A stretch of 64,000 bases of DNA from Blastocladiella emersonii ATCC 22665 (Eukaryota > Fungi > Blastocladiomycota): the NCBI GenBank assembly GCA_025594325.1, contig JANHCV010000001.1:4340001-4404000 (forward strand), written 5' to 3'. Positions 56,501 through 63,532 of the stretch are shown one piece after another. A model generated the notes under the pieces. That model was not told the DNA's origin, searched no databases, and saw only the letters and a program-made list of their open reading frames with translations. Position 1 is the stretch's first letter, and every line of letters starts with the position of its first letter. Made by a program: the position numbers and the translations under genes.

Positions 56501-59500
56501 CGCGCTGCTCCCCGTCCTGCCGCACGCGTCGTCCATGTCGATGGCGACGAGCCCAAGCCGGCGCCTGCGGTCCCGCCAAGGCCAGTCACAGCGTTTGACC
56601 CGCCCCCGGGCGTCTTCGTCACGGGCGCCGGCCGGCCGACGCTCGCGCCGTCCAAGGAGGGCCTCGAGCGCGCCCGAAAGTGGATCAACGCGCCGTCCAA
56701 CGACGATGCACAGGCGGAACTCGCCGCCTTCGCCACGTCCTCGCAGAAAGCCAAGCCGGCCCGGCCCGTCGTGCAGCAGCAGTCTCGCCTCGTGCAACGC
56801 GAGCCCGAGCCGCTCGACCGCGCGCGCTCCATGACGCCGCCGTCGCGCCCGCGCCCCCTCGGCGCGAGTGCGGGACCCGCAGTCACCCCGGCACCAACGC
56901 CGACGCGGGCTGTCGGGTTGCACACGGCGGCGACCCCACGCACCACCACGTCGCAGTTCCGCCCGCCGATGCGCCGGTCGTCGAGCGACGTGTCGCTCGG
57001 TCCCCGCACACCGCTTATCGTAACGCCCGCTTCGACCATGTCGCGGCAGTCGTCGTTCGCGACGCCGAGCCTGCCGCCGCGTGCAGCATCGGCCACGCCA
57101 GCTGTAGCGCCGAGCGTGCCCGCGACGCCGGTTCGTGGCCCCCGACCAATGTCCACGCCGGGCACCATGTCCGCGCCATCCACGGCAGTGAGGCCAGCCG
57201 CGCCCGCATCCGTGACCGCGACCGAGAACCAGGCCCCGCTCCGCCCGTCGCACACGCGCAAGTCGTCCAACGGCACCATGCTCTCGATGCGCACGCCGTC
57301 GCGGCCCGCGTCGACGCTCGGGCGGCAGGCCGCGAGCCGGCCCATGTTCAAGACGCCGCTCCGCGCTCCCTCGGCGGCCAAGGACGGGCAGACCGCGACG
57401 GCTCAGCTTCGGACTCCAGCCACGACGCCCGCGGCGGGGCGCCGGCGGTCCAACGTGCGCGCTTCGACGCCAGCGGCGACGCCGACTCGCACCGCGGGCG
57501 TCGCGTCCGTGTTCGACCTGCCGCCAGTTCCCTCGCTGGACCGCGTGTCGCTGCGCTCGCTTGGCGCGCCGGCCGTCGGCCGCGGATCCGTTCCGCAGTG
57601 GATTGCCCGCATCACGTCCGAGACCGCGGCATGGTTCCGGTTCCCGGGCGCTGCGCAGTGGGGTCCCTCGGACGTGCACGCCGCGCTTCTCGCCGCGGGC
57701 GCCGTGCCAAAACTCGTCAGCGAGGACTGGACGCGCAACCACTACCGGTGGATCGTGTGGAAGCTCGCGTGCCAGCACCGTGCGTACGCCGCGAACCCGG
57801 CCGCCGCCGCGCAGCTCCCGCCGTTCACCACGGACACGGTGGTGCGCCAGCTGCTGTACCGGTACGAGCGCGAGGTGGTGCGCGCCGAACGGCCCGTGCT
57901 CCGGCGGATCGTCGAGCGCGACGAGACGGCGCACCGGCCCATGGTCCTGTGCGTGGCGCGGATCGTGGCGGTCGAGGATCCCGAGTCGGGCAAGGCCATC
58001 GACGCCCTCGAGCTGACGGACGGGTGGTACTCGATCACGGCCAAGCTCGACGCGGCGCTGCTGCGCGCCGTGGACAACGGGCGGATCGTGGTCGGCGGTA
58101 AGCTCCTGGTCGGCGGCGCGTCGCTGGTCGCATCAGGCGACGGGGTCCCCGTCCTCGACACCGTCCCGACGTGGTCCGCGACGGGGTCCGAGCTGACGCC
58201 GCCCGACCACGCGGCGGTCTCGCTCAAGCTGTGCGGCAACTCGACCAAGCCCGCGCGGTGGGACGCCAAGCTCGGGCACGTTGCGGGCCCGCCGACGGTG
58301 CCCGTGGCGCTGCGCGCGCTTGCGGCGGACGGCGGCCCGTTCTCCGAGATCGCGGTCCAGATCCTGCGCGTGTACCCGACCATGTACATGGAGATCTTCC
58401 CGAACGGCGAGAAGGCGTACCGCAACCTCCGCGAGGAGCAGGCCGCGCAGGCCGACTACGAGCGGCTGCTGGTCCTCGGCGGCGGCGCCGAGGGCACCCG
58501 CGTCCGGTCGTTTGCGCGGCGGCCTGCTGACGCGATCGACGACGAGGAGCTCGCGCGCGCCGTTGCGCTCGGCACGATCCAGCACGCGCTCGCCGAGGTC
58601 TCGCCCGCGGTCGCGGCGCAGCTGCAGGAGCGCCTCGCGCAGCTCCCCGACCACATGGTGCACGCGGCGCGCGAGGCCGTCAAGCGCAACGTGACGCCCT
58701 TCTTCCGCATCAAGGTGGCGTGCGCGCGGCAATCCGCCGCGCGGTGCGTCGACGCCGACGGCGACCCGGTCCCCGTCGCGACCGCCGTCCTGACCGTGTG
58801 GCGGCCCGACGAGTCGATGCTGCACGAGATTCGCGAGGGCCGGTACTACCGCGTCGTGCACGGGCAGGTGTCGGGCTCGTTCCGCGACGTGCTGCGGCTG
58901 TCGACGACGCGCGGCACGCGGTGGGTGCCCCTGGCCGGCCCCATCGGGGACGCGCCGTCGCCATACGTCCCACGCGAGACGGTGCGCGATTTCGCGCAGC
59001 TCGCCGATACGGGCGACGGGCGCGCGCGCGAGATCGACGTCGAGGGCGTGGTGGTCCGCGTCCGCAAGCCCGCGGCGCATACGGCGGCGCCGCTCGAGAT
59101 CCATCTCGCGGACGCCAGGGGGTGCGCGTTCGCCGTGTTCCGCGCGTACGTCCAGATGTGGATCCCGTCGTTCCACGACTCGCTCAAGGTACGCCGTTCG
59201 GGTTCCTGCCCGTGTCGACCAGTTCACTGACCACCTCAACATGTAGCCCGGGACGAGCCTTGCGCTGCGCAACGTGCGCTGGACGGGCGACGACGCCGAG
59301 TGGCAGGTCGCGCAGCTCGCCGCGACCGACGAGACTGAGATCCGCCGCGTGTCTGCGGCCGCGTCGCTGCCCGCGCCGCTGCACGAGCTCGTCGCGCGGC
59401 TCGACGCGGTGCGGTACGGCGGGTATGCGCCGGCCAAGCGCGCGCGCGGAGGAGGTGGGGATGAGGGGGTCGACTGGGCCGCGTTCTTCAGTCAATCGCC

Positions 59501-59573: not shown

Positions 59574-61721
59574 TTAGGACGACGGGACGCGGCACCGTGC
59601 CGCCGGTGCAGCGACTGGGTCGGCGGCGGCCGCGACCTTGACGACCGGGACCCGGACGACGGGCACGGGCACGAGCCCGCGGCGCCGACGCTTGGTCGCG
59701 GGCGACATCGGTGCGAGGGATCCGTTCTCGCTTGCCGCCTCGTCGTCGTCGCTACCGCCGCCGTCCGACACGTCGCCGGGTGCAGGCGACGTCGGGTGAG
59801 ACCGCGGCCGCTTCAGCGGGCTCGCAGTGCTGGATCTGATGATGGCGGGGACGCGGGAGCTGGGCACGACGACCACGTGGCGCGGGGAGCGGGACGGGCT
59901 CTTGGTGGGCGTGGTGTTCCCGCCGAGCGCGGCCGCGGCGATGGCCGAGGCGAGCACGCGGTCGGGCGTGCGGAGGAGCGCGGGCGACTGCGGGCGCGAG
60001 ATGAGCGGCGCGCGGCGCGCGGGGGTCGGGGATGGTGGGTCCGCGGGGGCGGCGGGGCGCGGTGGGGAGGCGACGGGGGACATGAAGGTCGCGGGAGCGG
60101 CTGCTGTTGCTGCTGTCGCTGTTGTTGGTGGATCGGCGGCGGCGGGCGCGATCTCGGGCTCGGGCTCTGCGACCGTCTCGGGCTCGGGCTCGACCTGGCT
60201 GCCGCACGAGGACTGGGTATCGGGCGGAAAGTCCTCGCGCGGCTGCGCATGGCCGGCCGCGTCGGCGGCAAAGTCGGGGACCGCTGGCGGCTCGGGCGGT
60301 GGTGGTGGTGGCTGCGAGGCCTCGGCGGCGGCGTCGTCGTCGACCGTCTCGCTCGGCGGGGTCAGAGACTCGATGACAGCGGCCGGTACAGCGGGCCGGT
60401 CACCGAGCGATGGCGGCATGGGCGACGACCGTGCGCCGAGCGAGGGAGGCATGGGCGACGACCGTGCACCAAGCGACGGGGGCATGGGCGAGGACCGGGC
60501 CGACGGCGTGCTCACGAGCCGTGGTGTGCGCGGACACGGACTCGACGGCGGGGAGCTCGCAGCAACGCCGCCGTTGCGCGACGGGCTGGACGAGACGGGC
60601 GCGGACGAGAGGTCCGACGTCGCCAGCGTCGCCGACGCGATGGTACTGGGCGTGGCGGTCGCCGACGACGACGACTGGGTGAGGCCGAGGAGCGAGTGGG
60701 CGAGCGGGACGGGCGTGGCGCCGCCGACACGGCGGCTGAACGAGGAGGCGGCGGCGGTGGGCGAGCGCTTGACGCTCGACTTGAGGACGCGGCGGAGCAT
60801 GGGCGACGGGCGGGCCGAGGGCGACCCGAGCCCGGCGGTCGTCGAGGCGGTGCGGTCGATCTCGCGCGGGGGTTTGAGGATGGACCGCGGGGTGGTGACG
60901 CGGCGCGGGCTGGCGAGCGGGCTCGACGCGGGCGTGTGCGGGCCCGAGCGCGGGGTGCCGGAGAGCGAGCCCGGCGACTGCTCGCCGCGCACGACGGGCG
61001 AGTCGGGCGGCAGCGTCGAGTCGATGATCTCGGGGCGCAGCGGCGGGCCAAAGGAGATGTTGCGGCGCGGGGTCTTGGACACGGACGCGGACGCGGAGCG
61101 TGATGGGGTGCCTGATGGCGCGGCGGCCGACGACGTCGGGGTCGCCGAGGTGCCGAGGAGGGCGGCGACGGCGTCGGCGCTCGGCGTAGTGGGCGAGGCC
61201 GCCGCGCTCGGCGGTGCGGGCGACGCGGACAGGCGGCGCGGGATGGTCTGCGAGAGGAGGCGCAGGGCGGACCGGGGCTGCGCGGCCGTCAGGCCGGGCG
61301 ACGTGGTGGCAGTCGCCGACGCGGGCGCGGACATGGGCGAGCCAGGCGCCGAGGTGGTGCCGCTAATGAGCTCGAAGCGGAAGCGGCGCACGGACACGCT
61401 GCCCGCGCCAAACTCGATCAGGTCGCCCGACGCGAGGATGCGGTGCTCGCCAGCGGGGACGGGGAGCGTGTTGACGCAGAAGGCGGCTTTCCCGACGTTG
61501 TGGATGGCGACGCCGGCGGTCGAGTCGCCGGTCCAGAGCACGACGGTGCACTGCTCGGCGCACATGTCCGGGGTGACGAGGCGCACGTCGACGTGGGCGG
61601 CGCTGCCGATGGTGTTGGTGTGCTTGGTGAGCGGGAAGATGCGCTCGGGCAGGTTGGCCGCCTGCGGCACGTAGACGAGCCGCGCCGCGACGGCGGGCGG
61701 ACCGGCCACGGGCGCGGGCAT
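59574..61721 (-). CDS. Ki-67/RepoMan-like protein: N-terminal FHA domain + PP1-binding (RVxF/KiR-SLiM) segment + SILK motif, 715 aa, intronless, S/T-P rich
   Basis: FHA-like NTIGS..DVRL..QCTV..VN..LASGDLIEFG..RRFRFE; RRNISFGPPLRPEIIDSTLPPDSPVVRGE; PRSILKP. ATG at 61721 lies in the frame of ORF 59574-62018. Confidence 0.75.
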   Translation of the reverse strand: MPAPVAGPPAVAARLVYVPQAANLPERIFPLTKHTNTIGSAAHVDVRLVTPDMCAEQCTVVLWTGDSTAGVAIHNVGKAAFCVNTLPVPAGEHRILASGDLIEFGAGSVSVRRFRFELISGTTSAPGSPMSAPASATATTSPGLTAAQPRSALRLLSQTIPRRLSASPAPPSAAASPTTPSADAVAALLGTSATPTSSAAAPSGTPSRSASASVSKTPRRNISFGPPLRPEIIDSTLPPDSPVVRGEQSPGSLSGTPRSGPHTPASSPLASPRRVTTPRSILKPPREIDRTASTTAGLGSPSARPSPMLRRVLKSSVKRSPTAAASSFSRRVGGATPVPLAHSLLGLTQSSSSATATPSTIASATLATSDLSSAPVSSSPSRNGGVAASSPPSSPCPRTPRLVSTPSARSSPMPPSLGARSSPMPPSLGARSSPMPPSLGDRPAVPAAVIESLTPPSETVDDDAAAEASQPPPPPPEPPAVPDFAADAAGHAQPREDFPPDTQSSCGSQVEPEPETVAEPEPEIAPAAADPPTTATAATAAAPATFMSPVASPPRPAAPADPPSPTPARRAPLISRPQSPALLRTPDRVLASAIAAAALGGNTTPTKSPSRSPRHVVVVPSSRVPAIIRSSTASPLKRPRSHPTSPAPGDVSDGGGSDDDEAASENGSLAPMSPATKRRRRGLVPVPVVRVPVVKVAAAADPVAAPAARCRVPSS
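60403..60501 (-). repeat. 3 x 33-bp coding tandem repeat (ARSSPMPPSLG)x3
   Basis: Units 60403-60435, 60436-60468 and 60469-60501 are near-identical. Confidence 0.9.
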
Positions 61722-61726
61722 GGCGG

Positions 61727-61756
61727 GTCGGTCGGTCGGTCGGTCGGTCGGTCGGT
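61727..61756. repeat. (GTCG)7 microsatellite immediately 5' of the Ki-67-like start codon
   Basis: Seven perfect units at 61727-61754, ending 5 nt upstream of the minus-strand ATG at 61721. Confidence 0.9.
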
Positions 61757-62110
61757 GTGTGCGAGGAGCGGTGGCTCGGTGGCACACGTTGCGCAGAGTC
61801 GCGCGCAGTCGTTTTCGTTGCAGATTCGTCGGGGGTCGGGGGTCGGGGCCGTCGTCCGTCCGCATGCAGGTCGAAGCGTGCGAACAGCGGCCGACTGGGG
61901 CGCCTGACTCATTGGGAAGGTGGTCGCGGCGTTCAGGGCCCCTCGACCGGGGTGGCAGGTGAGTCAGCTGATGCGCTCGTCTGTTGGTTCGCCGTCGCCG
62001 CCGCGCCGTTCCGCGCACGGATCAGCGCGGCCCGCGAGCCCGCGCACGTCGACCGTGACGTCTGCCCGCCCCTCTACGTGCCAGTCCCCACCCCGCAACT
62101 CCCCGCCATC

Positions 62111-62439
62111 ATGTCGTACTGGAAGACCGCCGGCCTCTCGTTCGTGCCTCTCGACTCTGGCCGCCGCGGATCCCCCTCCCGCTAACCCGTGCCCGTGCCC
62201 CTCCAGGTACCTGCAGTACCTCAACATCGCCTCGCGCGCGACCCGCAACGCCCTCAAGGCCGACCTCAAGGTGGTCGCTGCCCGCCGCGACGAGCAGACC
62301 CTCAAGGTCTCCAAGTGGGTCCAGGGCAAGCAGGGTGAGGCTGTACGTGCTCTCCCTCCTATACTGCACGGCGAAGACCGGTCGCTAACTCCGACACGCT
62401 GCGCTTCTGTAGAAGGACGTCCTTGCCCCCAAGGCCTAA
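62111..62439 (+). CDS. ATP15: Mitochondrial F1 ATP synthase epsilon subunit, 63 aa; exons 62111-62139, 62207-62342, 62413-62439
   Basis: MSYWKTAGLSYLQYLNIASRATRNALK..KVSKW..GKQGE; both introns are canonical and in phase. Confidence 0.92.
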
Positions 62440-62752
62440 GCGGCGACTCCCTCGCGCTTCCTGTACATGCCCTCGTCCGGGCGTGGTTGTCACGGCGGGT
62501 GACCCTGCTCGCCGTCGGCTGCGCCACGGGCTTCTCTCCCCTCACCGAAATTCCTACCGTACCCCTCGTCTACTCGCGCCGAATGCTGAATGGATCGTGT
62601 TTTGAATCACCATCGCGCGCGCGCCGCTCATCAGATCGTCACGTCCGAGCCAGGAAGTGAGTGCAGTCAGGCAGAACAAATCAAATTGGACAGGTGGTGA
62701 GAGGGGAGATCGTGGGGTAGAGACAAGGAGAGTAGCACTCGGGTCCGAGCAC

Positions 62753-63532
62753 TTAGTGGTGGTGGTGGTGCTCCTGCTCGAAGCGGATGCCGCAGTAGCC
62801 GCACGAGTGGTTGCCGGGCTGGTCCAGGTTGATGTACACCTTGGGGTGGCCGAGCGGGCCGCCTACGTGATCCGCGAGTCAGCGACCGCGTTGCGAGGAC
62901 CTGAGCAGAGGAAGGGTACGAACCGCCGCCGTCGCACGCGACGATGCGCTTGTTGACCTTGCGCACGGGCTCCTGCGCGATCAGGTCCATGGCCGGCGTG
63001 GGCTTGGGCTACACGGCGCACGCAAGGTCAGAGCTATGGTCTCCCATTGAACAGAACCCGTCGAACGCACCTGAGCCTCGAGGTCAATCTGCTCGAAGCG
63101 GGGGCCGGTCATGACCACCTCCTTGCGCTTGTAGTAGGCGTAGTCCTTGGACGACACCGTCGCCGTGGCGGTCGCCTTGGGGGCAGCGGCCACCTCGGAC
63201 GAGAGGAGACGCTAGACATCAACGGAAGTACGTGACGTCGTCAGGGCCGAGTCCACCTTGTGTTGCTCCATCACCGCTGGGTGTGCTCGCGAGGGAGGGT
63301 GGGGTTCGCGCGGGCGAGATCGGCGGGGAGCAGGCTCAAGCGCCCGTCTGCGAGAGACACGGTCCGGTGTTGATACATGGTAGGCCCTGGGCCAGTCGTG
63401 ATACATTGCATGTTGCGCGGTTCCCTCCCTCCTCCCTCCCTCGCAAGTCGATCCATGGTCATGGTTCCGAGGCAGGAAACCCACCAGAGCGGGGCGGCGC
63501 ACGGCCGCGGCACGGGACGTGAAGCGAAGCAT
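62753..63532 (-). CDS. NDUFS6: Complex I 13-kDa zinc-binding subunit (NDUFS6/NUMM), 127 aa; exons 63485-63532, 63071-63211, 62924-63008, 62753-62862
   Basis: Presequence [21 protein letters not shown]; [60 protein letters not shown] (zf-CHCC); ends in HHHHH. Confidence 0.92.
63286..63447 (-). promoter_or_regulatory. Long-range 14-bp stem in NDUFS6 intron 1
   Basis: On the minus strand CTTGCGAGGGAGGG (63447-63434) pairs with CCCTCCCTCGCGAG (63299-63286): 13 Watson-Crick pairs + 1 G:U. Confidence 0.72.

Follow-up and report, generated by a model that had tools for sequence, protein, structure and literature searches.

The window analysed here (the whole stretch of 64,000 nucleotides of Blastocladiella emersonii DNA) carries on its reverse strand a gene that is probably the blastoclad orthologue of the Ki-67/bridgin family, and for which we propose a function in PP1 docking on chromatin or the kinetochore. 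The encoded protein is composed of an N-terminal FHA domain, a linker of about 100 residues, an RVxF/KiR segment, a TPRSILK element and about 430 disordered basic residues. A preliminary description of the locus, made from the letters alone, had already suggested a Ki-67/RepoMan-type protein from its N-terminal FHA, its RVxF plus KiR-type segment and its basic, S/T-P-rich tail, and had placed it in an apparently zoosporic fungus; homology to the Ki-67 type and the fungal origin both hold, the nearest relatives being Blastocladiella britannica and Allomyces macrogynus, which share the ATP15 neighbour of the gene. The gene and its 5′ region are as follows:

59574-61721, reverse strand: complete single-exon CDS of the Ki-67/bridgin-like protein (unbroken translation of 715 aa, stop codon at 59576-59574)
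61722-62110, 389 bp, no strand assigned: 5′ region shared with the divergent ATP15 gene (sequence, TRF and Pfam)

An identical 715-aa protein is already present in a database record. In the predicted CDS, GC3 ranges from 0.77 to 1.00 in 23 of the 24 windows of 90 nt (at least 0.87 in 18 of them), with a single dip to 0.63 at aa 511-540; outside the CDS it is 0.63-0.73 ahead of the ATG and 0.43 past the stop. The ATP15 gene starts at an ATG at 62111 on the forward strand, head-to-head with the Ki-67/bridgin-like gene, and was identified by a Pfam ATP-synt_Eps match on 62220-62420 (E=4e-10). The intergenic region contains a (CGAC)7 repeat at 61726-61756 (TRF). B. britannica and A. macrogynus have the two genes head-to-head as well, and this conserved neighbour supports the orthology of the three blastoclad genes. 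The ORF at 62667-62990 (reverse strand), expected to encode NDUFS6, had no Pfam match and was therefore left out as a synteny anchor.

The Ki-67/bridgin-like proteins of blastoclads are 715-816 aa long (the Allomyces gene model is truncated), and the B. britannica and Allomyces orthologues retain the FHA domain, the PP1 segment and TPRSILK in that order. A word-indexed homology search with aa 1-300 returned the self-match only, and an exhaustive HMMER search was required to recover the relatives. Default BLASTP of the 715-aa protein against one of them (P0002) gave no match because compositional adjustment suppresses it; without this adjustment the two proteins are colinear, and the informative parts of the alignment are the FHA domain, the PP1 segment and TPRSILK. 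Past about aa 285 no significant similarity to any relative was detected. The basic C-termini are alike in character (pI 12.0 in B. britannica and 11.3 for the downstream ORF of Allomyces). Since comparison of the C-termini of the three blastoclads yielded only E>1, a candidate conserved C-terminal module, consisting of an acidic cluster and KRxR, was dropped and is not used as evidence.

The PP1-docking segment is composed of two adjoining parts:

61050-61064, reverse strand: RVxF-type PP1 docking motif R-N-I-S-F, aa 220-224 (regular expression, alignment to Ki-67)
60972-61049, reverse strand: Phi-Phi and KiR-SLiM-like segment GPPLRPEIIDSTLPPDSPVVRGEQSP, aa 225-250 (phmmer against PDB, fungal profile)

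RNISF is the sole match of the whole protein to the expression [RK]x(0,1)[VI]{P}[FW], which arises in 5.8% of tail shuffles, and it aligns with residues R-V-S-F 505-508 of Ki-67 (numbering of PMC5005033). Together with the following residues it forms RNISFGPPLRPEIIDSTLPPDSPVVRGE (aa 220-247). The preliminary description had located the segment at about 60972-61067, which is correct and corresponds to aa 219-250; the Ki-67 sequence that it quoted, with about 16 of 30 residues matching, was also essentially right, as phmmer against PDB aligned aa 218-248 with the Ki-67 chain 5J28_C at 17 identities out of 31 (E=3.1e-5). The human residues aligned one by one in this way are those in contact with PP1 in the crystal structure. 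Matches to RepoMan were weaker than those to Ki-67, with E-values from 0.026 (5INB_B) to 0.049. We also used an independent profile built from six PP1 segments of non-blastoclad fungi, the query being excluded. Among the 997 six-frame pieces of the window, this profile gave the ORF 43.4-43.7 bits (E=1e-12); the next-best piece reached 6.0 bits, and none of 5,000 composition-matched shuffles exceeded 12.0 bits. The phmmer E-value and the score of about 43.7 bits with the independent profile make the homology to the KiR-SLiM segment clear. The segment is kept in B. britannica and Allomyces, and it is also present in Cladochytrium, Borealophlyctis, Podochytrium, Basidiobolus, Mortierellaceae and vertebrate Ki-67. 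These comparisons indicate that the stretch from RNISF to the KiR part is a homologue of the Ki-67/RepoMan PP1-binding segment, and they disfavour a chance match.

Pfam families gave a more uneven picture. PP1_bind (PF15276) matched the protein over profile positions 2-43 of 62 with 20.8 bits (E=4.7e-4), which is under the gathering score of 27; the same family scored 26.1 bits in Allomyces and 36-87 bits in chytrids and Basidiobolus. The Pfam FHA family did not match the 715-aa protein even at E-values up to 10. Of the two Pfam families named in the preliminary description, PP1_bind is thus detected below its cut-off and FHA is not detected. The Pfam search of the B. britannica protein yielded neither an FHA nor a PP1_bind match, and the truncated Allomyces model passes Pfam FHA only (22.4, cut-off 20.7).

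The KiR-SLiM consensus reads FDxxLP(P/A)N(T/S)PL(R/K)(R/K)Gx(T/S)P (PMC5005033). In IDSTLPPDSPVVRGEQSP, 8 of the 14 specified positions are exact, three others differ by conservative substitutions (F to I, N to D and L to V), and the final S-P stands one residue off its consensus position. Isoleucine stands in place of F517, the most buried residue, and aspartate in place of N524 (Ki-67 numbering). As far as the sequence goes, membership of the strict KiR-SLiM consensus is not as clear as homology to the segment. Asparagine replaces the arginine directly before the V of RVxF, so that the Aurora-type arginine at position -2 of the switch serine is missing. The phospho-switch serine highlighted in the preliminary description does exist in B. 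emersonii (NISF), but both sister species have SVRF and the residue is not conserved.

The second recognisable part of the protein lies at its N-terminus:

61362-61694, reverse strand: FHA-fold domain, aa 10-120, with a degenerate phosphopeptide site (AF2, Foldseek, profiles)

The AF2 model of aa 10-120 has a pLDDT of 79.6, a pTM of 0.69 and 10 strands, and the domain ends with VRRFRFE (aa 111-117). In the Foldseek comparison with PDB, FHA domains make up 50 of the 50 matches listed (probability 1.00, TM 0.62-0.76), including the Ki-67 structures 1R21 (rank 3) and 2AFF. A profile built from blastoclads only placed the Ki-67 FHA (1R21/2AFF) at the top of the PDB sequences with E=8e-5, a modest lead over the next protein at 1.5e-3; with a fungal FHA profile of seven sequences Ki-67 again came first (E=7e-19, CHFR following at 1e-12). 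Alignment by hhalign to a profile of Ki-67-like FHA domains from chytrids and Basidiobolus gave a probability of 98.3% (E=1.4e-14). The model and the profiles together point to an FHA fold of the Ki-67 subtype. The 'FHA-like' assignment of the preliminary description is hence right for the fold and its RRFRFE ending, but the residues that bind phosphothreonine are gone: of the canonical GRSHNN set, only two of six are kept (G39 and N84), the R being replaced by S40, the S by C54, the H by Q57 and the N of NGT by Ala. The site reads GS for GR and CAEQ for SxxH, and NGT is absent; the same losses are seen in B. britannica and Allomyces. With two of the six residues left, phospho-binding of the NIFK type is unlikely.

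A third conserved element follows the PP1 segment:

60873-60893, reverse strand: TPRSILK, aa 277-283, an exact SILK match (identical in three blastoclads)

PRSILKP, which had been reported downstream of the PP1 segment, is indeed there (aa 278-284, nt 60890-60870), with SILK itself at aa 280-283. An exact match to [GS]IL[KR] occurs in 1.3% of tail shuffles. In known SILK proteins (of the Inhibitor-2 and KNL1 type), SILK is N-terminal to RVxF. In the blastoclad protein it comes 56 residues after RNISF, on the C-terminal side, and TPRSILK aligns with an (I/L/V)LK element carried by Ki-67 proteins of Basidiobolus, chytrids and vertebrates, which speaks against the earlier interpretation as a classical second dock. 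Judging from these alignments, the blastoclad SILK appears to be a local form of an older element of the Ki-67 family. For human Ki-67, lengthening of the 496-536 segment gave no stronger PP1 binding (PMC5005033).

The remainder of the protein is a long tail of biased composition:

60312-61361, reverse strand: basic, S/T-P-rich disordered region, aa 121-470, pI 11.8 (charge, pI, AF2)
60401-60497, reverse strand: 33-nt tandem repeat in 2.9 copies encoding ARSSPMPPSLG three times (TRF score 145, 87% matches)
60072-60371, reverse strand: acidic Pro-rich patch, aa 451-550, net charge -18 (charge profile)
59577-60041, reverse strand: basic C-terminal region, aa 561-715 (155 aa), pI 11.7 (charge, pI)

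After aa 121, the full-length AF2 model (from an alignment of two sequences) has a pLDDT of about 30-40 and no secondary structure. The tail is rich in P, A, S and T, with P, S, T, A and G accounting for 50-82% of each 40-aa window past aa 121, and the whole protein has a pI of 10.6. NLS-like motifs are present in the C-terminal region (KRPRS at 59799-59813 and KRRRR at 59679-59693). Residues 121-715 contain 41 S/T-P sites, against 27.3±4.0 in shuffles (P=4e-4), and 10 full CDK consensus sites S/T-P-x-K/R, against 2.6±1.5 (P=2e-4). The long, basic, S/T-P-rich disordered tail with a tandem repeat of the preliminary description is therefore present in every respect, and each 11-aa ARSSPMPPSLG unit bears an S-P site. 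No match to Pfam KI67R was found in the 715-aa protein, whose sole repeat is this unrelated 11-aa unit in three copies.

From these features we propose the following mechanism. The stretch from RNISF to RGEQSP would dock the single fungal-type PP1 catalytic subunit through its RVxF, Phi-Phi and KiR pockets, and the basic tail would retain the PP1 complex on chromatin or DNA by charge, as for bridgin and Ki-67. Phosphorylation by CDK at the many S/T-P sites, among them S241-P and S249-P of the docking segment, would keep PP1 off, as would a phosphate on S223 of the RVxF motif; as CDK activity falls at mitotic exit, PP1 would be delivered to chromosomal or kinetochore substrates. Since R, S, H and N of GRSHNN are lost in the three blastoclads, their FHA is probably a phospho-independent interaction or structural module, in which case PP1 docking would be the part under strongest constraint. 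Mitosis in blastoclads is closed, so that the perichromosomal-coat role known from animals need not apply. One may go further and see in the blastoclad protein the reduced functional core of the family, with the FHA as a phospho-blind relic and the RVxF-KiR segment and TP-x-S-I-L-K held constant, a speculative reading that we think rather unlikely. Were it true, the ancestral, essential function of the family would be delivery of PP1 to chromatin and not phospho-recognition by the FHA, and (I/L/V)LK would be an unrecognised extra PP1 contact, with the SILK pocket reached from the C-terminal side of RVxF.

The protein could instead have the specific role of bridgin, that is, act as a linker confined to the kinetochore and recruited by KMN, with its basic tail on centromeric chromatin and PP1 serving the dephosphorylation of kinetochores in anaphase instead of a coat over whole chromosomes. 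We regard this as doubtful for the blastoclad gene, even if the sole experimentally studied fungal member acts in this way and has its parts in the same order, the basic C-terminus is preceded by an acidic patch (aa 451-550) here too, and closed mitosis makes a chromosome surfactant unneeded. The FHA domain of bridgin contributes to its kinetochore localisation, whereas the phospho-binding residues of the FHA are lost here; moreover, 715 aa is about half the size of bridgin, the bridgin repeat motif was not detected, and the table of the bridgin study lists no homologue for Allomyces, the blastoclad that it included (PMC7794384).

Two further explanations would remove the gene from the Ki-67/bridgin family. 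The RVxF motif with its proline-rich stretch could be a chance or convergent short motif in a biased ORF, or the ORF might not be a gene at all: regional GC content is 0.72-0.77, the sequence of 73-75% GC gives long overlapping ORFs rich in P, A, S and R on both strands, the Pfam scores are under the curated cut-offs, and a search for sequencing runs listed DNA runs only for the probable source sample. This explanation, already largely refuted, is scarcely credible in view of the GC3 periodicity, whose limits are the ATG and the stop, the 43.7 bits obtained with the query-free profile (5,000 shuffles did not exceed 12, nor the rest of the window 6), the order of FHA, PP1 segment and TPRSILK found at a syntenic position in two other blastoclads, and the confidently modelled FHA fold. 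A nuclear PP1 regulator of the NIPP1 (PPP1R8) type, acting in RNA processing rather than mitosis, is the other alternative. NIPP1 has an N-terminal FHA, an RVxF motif and a basic C-terminus, and is both an inhibitor and a substrate specifier of PP1; the gross layout is alike, with an FHA, an RVxF about 100 residues on and a basic tail. Such an identity is nevertheless very unlikely: no NIPP1 chain is found among the PDB matches of either FHA profile, both of which rank Ki-67 first, the 26 residues past RVxF match Ki-67 and RepoMan specifically, and the linking relatives carry Pfam PP1_bind and have vertebrate Ki-67 as their best non-fungal matches.

The blastoclad Ki-67/bridgin gene is thus a real relative that was already anticipated. 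The preliminary description considered a fungal version notable and knew of no functional description; this part does not stand, as bridgin has been characterised (PMC7794384) and a 2026 preprint lists fungal Ki-67 homologues. Its surmise that automated annotations may already match similar fungal proteins proved accurate, with GenBank entries named 'antigen Ki-67' in Basidiobolus, Podochytrium and Mortierellaceae. Nothing is overturned here, since the literature and database annotation already include fungal Ki-67-like proteins and one functional member. The points that appear undescribed are the blastoclad member itself (Allomyces being unlisted in the bridgin study), the FHA site reduced to two of six residues, and SILK as a family element located C-terminal to RVxF. 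The family is extended to Blastocladiomycota. The RVxF-KiR segment, which a 2016 description restricted to Ki-67 and RepoMan, is common to chytrids, blastoclads, Basidiobolus, Mortierellaceae and vertebrates, and is therefore older than open mitosis and than the divergence of animals and fungi. Having lost the FHA phospho-site but kept an intact PP1 dock, the blastoclad version amounts to a natural separation-of-function allele, and offers a small, tractable protein for probing the role of the Ki-67/bridgin family in closed mitosis.

The closest characterised system is bridgin (Bgi1) of Cryptococcus neoformans, which has in common with the blastoclad protein the order of FHA, PP1 dock, acidic unstructured part and basic C-terminus. 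PP1 co-purifies with bridgin, for which the authors name Ki67 as the metazoan homologue (Sridhar et al., 2021; PMC7794384), and its C-terminus requires positive charge alone, such that the basic region of Ki67 can substitute for it (PMC7794384). Bridgin has 1295 aa, 13 internal repeats and an 'unconventional' PP1 site of four residues (PMC7794384), whereas the blastoclad protein, compared here with Bgi1 by description, has 715 aa, a near-complete KiR-type segment, an exact SILK and a degenerate FHA.

Human Ki-67 (MKI67) also has its FHA at the extreme N-terminus (1R21 and 2AFF being the best PDB sequence match), and its PP1 segment shares with the blastoclad one the residues S-F, L-R-P-E, D, L-P-P, S/T-P and R-G-E, among others. 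Both proteins are disordered and basic, with many CDK sites and short internal repeats. In contrast, human Ki-67 has 3256 aa and 16-fold repeats that are lacking here, and its PP1 segment lies about 400 residues past the FHA instead of about 100. The structure of Ki-67 496-536 with PP1 is known (PDB 5J28), and phosphorylation of S507 is inhibitory, as is CDK-site phosphorylation of RepoMan (PMC5005033). RepoMan/CDCA2 (5INB, 5IOH) has the RVxF / Phi-Phi / KiR-SLiM segment in common with the blastoclad protein, in which the S/T-P sites for CDK within the segment correspond to S412 and S419 of RepoMan (PMC5005033). At the position of RepoMan S400 (L-S-P-E), the blastoclad protein has Arg, as in Ki-67 (L-R-P-E), whereas this residue is Ser or Asn in the relatives from chytrids, Basidiobolus and Mortierellaceae. 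To our knowledge, RepoMan has no FHA domain. An identity with RepoMan/CDCA2 was rejected, given the N-terminal FHA and the weaker RepoMan match.

Other proteins of early fungi combining FHA and PP1_bind are those of Cladochytrium replicatum (KAI8807291), Borealophlyctis, Podochytrium, Basidiobolus ranarum (KAK9764643) and Mortierellaceae, with the PP1 segment consensus RRxVxFGPxL(S/R)PEIFDxxLPPx(S/T)P(V/L)(K/R)RG. They have the same domain order as the blastoclad protein, but are larger (1200-2200 aa) and score above the Pfam cut-offs for FHA and PP1_bind, which the blastoclad proteins fail. The FHA of most of them retains GR, SxxH and NGT (GK and S..Q in Basidiobolus), which are lost in blastoclads, and their best non-fungal matches are vertebrate Ki-67 proteins.

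The preliminary description had read the 715-aa protein encoded at 59574-61721 (record P0001) as a PP1 scaffold of the Ki-67/RepoMan type, combining an FHA domain, an RVxF/KiR-SLiM docking segment and a SILK motif. This observation is confirmed and goes far beyond what chance would produce. The elements it listed (the VRRFRFE domain end, the PP1 segment, PRSILKP, the basic tail and the tandem repeat) were all found in place, and the ORF is very probably homologous to the Ki-67 family in both modules. Its features, read from the translation where given in amino acids, are as follows:

59574-61721 (-): Ki-67/bridgin-like ORF, one ORF of 715 codons plus stop
aa 111-117 (-): VRRFRFE, end of the N-terminal domain
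aa 220-247 (-): PP1 segment RNISFGPPLRPEIIDSTLPPDSPVVRGE (aa 219-250 = nt 61067-60972)
aa 278-284 (-): PRSILKP
60401-60497 (-): tandem repeat, 33 nt x 2.9, coding for ARSSPMPPSLG x3
tail: basic and P/A/S/T-rich, pI 10.6, net charge +18
aa 121-470: basic stretch, pI 11.8
aa 451-550: acidic patch, net charge -18
aa 561-715: basic C-terminus, pI 11.7, carrying KRPRS and KRRRR

Since the GC content around the ORF is 72-77% and both strands carry long overlapping ORFs, its length alone is uninformative. In its frame, GC3 passes from 0.63-0.73 upstream to 0.97 at the ATG (61721) and drops to 0.43 past the stop; inside the ORF it lies at 0.77-1.00 in 23 of 24 windows of 90 nt, and at 0.87 or more in 18. 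Because codon-position composition thus fits the frame from ATG to stop, the gene is taken as single-exon, with an in-frame intron possible. The single dip (0.63, aa 511-540, window 60102-60191), which codes for PEPE/TATAATAAA low-complexity sequence, could reflect either a repeat with relaxed codon usage or such a small intron. The public protein collection contains an identical entry, a singleton to which no Pfam domain is attached.

In a phmmer search of all PDB chains, aa 218-248 of the PP1 segment region matched Ki-67 as crystallised with PP1gamma (5J28 chain C) with 17/31 identities (E=3.1e-5), which also confirmed the human sequence given in the preliminary description; the RepoMan peptides 5INB and 5IOH followed at E=0.026-0.049. 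A query-free control profile of 34 positions, built from six segments of other fungi (two from Basidiobolus, two from Cladochytrium, one from Borealophlyctis and one from a metagenomic fragment), scored the ORF at 43.4 bits (E=1e-12; the search covered 997 six-frame pieces of the window). No other piece exceeded 6.0 bits, and 5,000 shuffles of the protein gave at most 12.0 bits. An RVxF match by itself arises in 5.8% of tail shuffles. A Swiss-Prot search with the most degenerate KiR-SLiM retrieved only Ki-67 and RepoMan (Kumar et al., 2016; PMC5005033).

In the alignment to 5J28 chain C, numbered as in Kumar et al. (2016; PMC5005033), R220-N221-I222-S223-F224 correspond to Ki-67 R504-R505-V506-S507-F508, and L228-R229-P230-E231 are identical to L512-R513-P514-E515. 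D234, L237, P238 and P239 are also identical, D240 replaces N524, S241-P242 occupy the (T/S)-P position, and V243-V244-R245-G246-E247 stand at L-K-R-G-E. The most buried residue, F517, is replaced by I233; the F517A change is reported not to impair RepoMan function (PMC5005033). Of the 14 positions specified in the consensus FDxxLP(P/A)N(T/S)PL(R/K)(R/K)Gx(T/S)P (PMC5005033), 8 are matched exactly and three show conservative changes; the last S-P is shifted by one residue.

The proposal that the phospho-switch is kept is weakened on two counts. S223 of the RVxF motif and the S/T-P sites of the segment are present. The residue at -2 of S223 is Asn (N221), not the Arg that Aurora-type kinases need, and the sister blastoclads have Arg at the x position (SVRF), so that S223 is not conserved across the lineage. 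In RepoMan, PP1 binding is blocked by phosphorylation of the CDK sites to which S241 and S249 correspond (PMC5005033).

We predict that the protein is likely to dock PP1, with aa 220-250 engaging the phosphatase as in 5J28; fungal PP1 has Arg20, the residue read by the KiR segment. CDK phosphorylation, possibly joined by that of S223, would gate PP1 binding until mitotic exit. Additional RVxF-type elements were seen in two relatives. The Blastocladiella britannica protein KAI9223700 (P0002; L001:6001-8514) has a second match, R-V-K-W, at aa 792-795 in its basic C-terminus, with no counterpart in the window protein. The Basidiobolus ranarum protein KAK9764643 (P0003) carries two complete RVxF-KiR segments in tandem at aa 379-470, 58 residues apart, which would let one scaffold hold two PP1 molecules.

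The SILK motif had been proposed as a second established PP1 dock, and an exact SILK arises in 1.3% of tail shuffles. Known SILK proteins carry the motif N-terminal to RVxF; here it lies on the C-terminal side, 56 residues away. TPRSILK, identical in the three blastoclads (B. emersonii, B. britannica and Allomyces), aligns with a [ST]P..(I/L/V)LK[KRS] element found 25-55 residues past the KiR segment in relatives: SSLLK in Basidiobolus, GTVLK in Podochytrium, QFVLK in Cladochytrium, TSLLK in the metagenomic fragment, and AVLKR and AVLKK in the Ki-67 of Latimeria and Dromiciops. Because of this alignment with both fungal and vertebrate relatives, we read SILK, on sequence grounds, as the form that an old family element takes here rather than as an independently added second dock. 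Lengthening the human Ki-67 496-536 peptide is reported not to improve PP1 binding (PMC5005033).

Pfam FHA gave no match in the ORF even at E up to 10. Modelled with AlphaFold2 on a 7-sequence alignment, aa 1-125 form an all-beta domain of ten strands (mean pLDDT 79.6, pTM 0.69), and the 50 Foldseek matches listed from the PDB are all FHA domains (probability 1.00), among which Ki-67 (1R21, rank 3; 2AFF, rank 17) has the highest sequence identities, 23-24%. In the PDB, the best match to a profile of the three blastoclad domains alone is the FHA of human Ki-67 (E=8e-5), followed by KIF13B (1.5e-3), and a 7-sequence fungal profile gives E=7e-19 for Ki-67 versus 1.3e-12 for CHFR. In profile-profile comparison, the blastoclad domain matches the chytrid/Basidiobolus Ki-67-like FHA over 112 columns (98.3% probability, E=1.4e-14). 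Of the six residues G R S H N N that define the phosphothreonine site (2026 preprint, 10.64898/2026.06.18.733134), two are kept (G39 and N84): GR has become GS, SxxH reads CAEQ and NGT is missing. B. britannica and Allomyces show the same losses, whereas chytrids and Entomortierella retain GR, SxxH and NGT. The modelled domain thus has an FHA fold with a degenerate phosphothreonine site, and would have stopped reading phosphothreonine. Coelacanth (Latimeria) Ki-67 retains GR and SxxH, with NPA replacing NGT. In the marsupial Dromiciops gliroides (P0029), SxxH reads NKQQ, both Ser and His being replaced; loss of canonical residues may not be confined to blastoclads, or this gene model may be imperfect.

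An exhaustive HMMER search with aa 1-265 returned six proteins at E up to 0.001: the query, B. britannica KAI9223700 (816 aa, E=1.8e-16), Allomyces macrogynus KNE55676 (411 aa, a gene model shortened by assembly gaps), Cladochytrium replicatum KAI8807291, Basidiobolus ranarum KAK9764643 and a 146-aa metagenomic fragment. In the B. britannica and Allomyces loci the gene stands head-to-head with that of the mitochondrial ATP synthase epsilon subunit. The window has the same layout (ATP-synt_Eps at 62220-62420, E=4e-10; ATP15 ATG at 62111 (+)), with a 389-bp 5' region common to the two divergent genes. This shared ATP15 synteny makes the three proteins orthologues, and the genome is that of a blastoclad, so the preliminary assignment to a zoosporic fungus was right. 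The order FHA, RVxF-KiR segment, TPRSILK is kept in all three.

With 1333-1612 aa, the chytrid and Basidiobolus proteins exceed the blastoclad ones in length, and their FHA and PP1_bind matches both clear the Pfam cut-offs. A search from the Basidiobolus protein finds vertebrate Ki-67 as best non-fungal matches (E down to 6e-20), together with Podochytrium and Mortierellaceae proteins named 'antigen identified by monoclonal antibody Ki-67' in GenBank. Around the gene itself, a perfect (CGAC/GGTC)x7.8 microsatellite (61726-61756) lies directly upstream of the ATG, inside the ATP15-shared region. The convergent neighbour at 57500-59230 (+) is a BRCA2 orthologue (BRCA-2_OB1, E=2e-32; BRCA-2_helical, E=2e-14). 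As its long ORF stops at 59230, the two 3' ends lie within ~350 bp of each other, and separate terminators would have little or no space.

From aa 121 to the end, the full-length AlphaFold2 model (two-sequence alignment) has pLDDT 30-40 and no secondary structure, and P+S+T+A+G make up 50-82% of each 40-residue window. The tail is enriched in S/T-P sites (41 versus 27.3+/-4.0 in shuffles, P=4e-4) and full CDK consensus sites (10 versus 2.6+/-1.5, P=2e-4), and its charge runs in basic, acidic and basic blocks; the basic parts would bind chromatin through charge. In Allomyces, an ORF with six RGPGRPRK AT-hook-like repeats (L002, GG745329.1:10244-11326 (+), pI 11.3) lies ~2.7 kb downstream of the truncated orthologue, past several assembly gaps. 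Annotated as a separate 288-aa gene, it ends in an acidic cluster followed by ...PASKRARVG, and may be the missing basic, DNA-binding C-terminus of the Ki-67-like gene.

Taken together, the protein is quite probably a blastoclad orthologue of the Ki-67/bridgin family acting through a PP1-docking mechanism. It could act on chromosome-wide or nucleolar chromatin, as Ki-67, or at the kinetochore, as bridgin, with about even chances. Given that blastoclads divide with closed mitosis, we do not expect a surfactant role linked to open mitosis. The protein fills the blastoclad gap in the family, shows the putative KiR-type PP1 dock to be ancient and offers a natural 'FHA-dead, PP1-dock-intact' variant, usable for dissecting the core function of the family.

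The family and its fungal presence were already known from the bridgin study (Sridhar et al., 2021; PMC7794384) and a June 2026 preprint (10.64898/2026.06.18.733134), so the preliminary finding, genuine and well observed, adds a further member rather than a surprise. Our literature search found no description of blastoclad members, of their degenerate FHA or of whole-KiR-segment conservation across early-diverging fungi. The view that a fungal version would be notable and lacks any functional description does not stand, given bridgin (Bgi1), characterised in Cryptococcus neoformans, and the Ki-67-like fungal proteins of the preprint and GenBank names. The preprint, which mentions neither bridgin nor blastoclads, uses N-terminal FHA, RVxF motif, disorder, basic charge, repeats and CDK sites as criteria and reports Ki-67-like proteins in non-vertebrates, including the fungi Malassezia, Mycoemilia and Paramicrosporidium. 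Supplementary Data 4 of the bridgin study lists homologues in Batrachochytrium, Rozella, Paramicrosporidium, Smittium, Jimgerdemannia and Dictyostelium and is blank for Allomyces macrogynus, Basidiobolus and Spizellomyces (PMC7794384).

Past ~aa 285, our protein has no significant sequence similarity to any relative found, only physicochemical character being held in common, as likewise reported for the tails of Ki-67 and bridgin (10.64898/2026.06.18.733134; PMC7794384). PP1 was found in the bridgin interactome, and the Ki67 basic region can functionally replace the bridgin basic domain (PMC7794384). Bridgin combines an N-terminal FHA domain, a putative PP1 docking site, an acidic unstructured region and a basic C-terminus (PMC7794384), and the blastoclad protein has an FHA domain, a predicted PP1 dock, an acidic region and a basic C-terminus as well.
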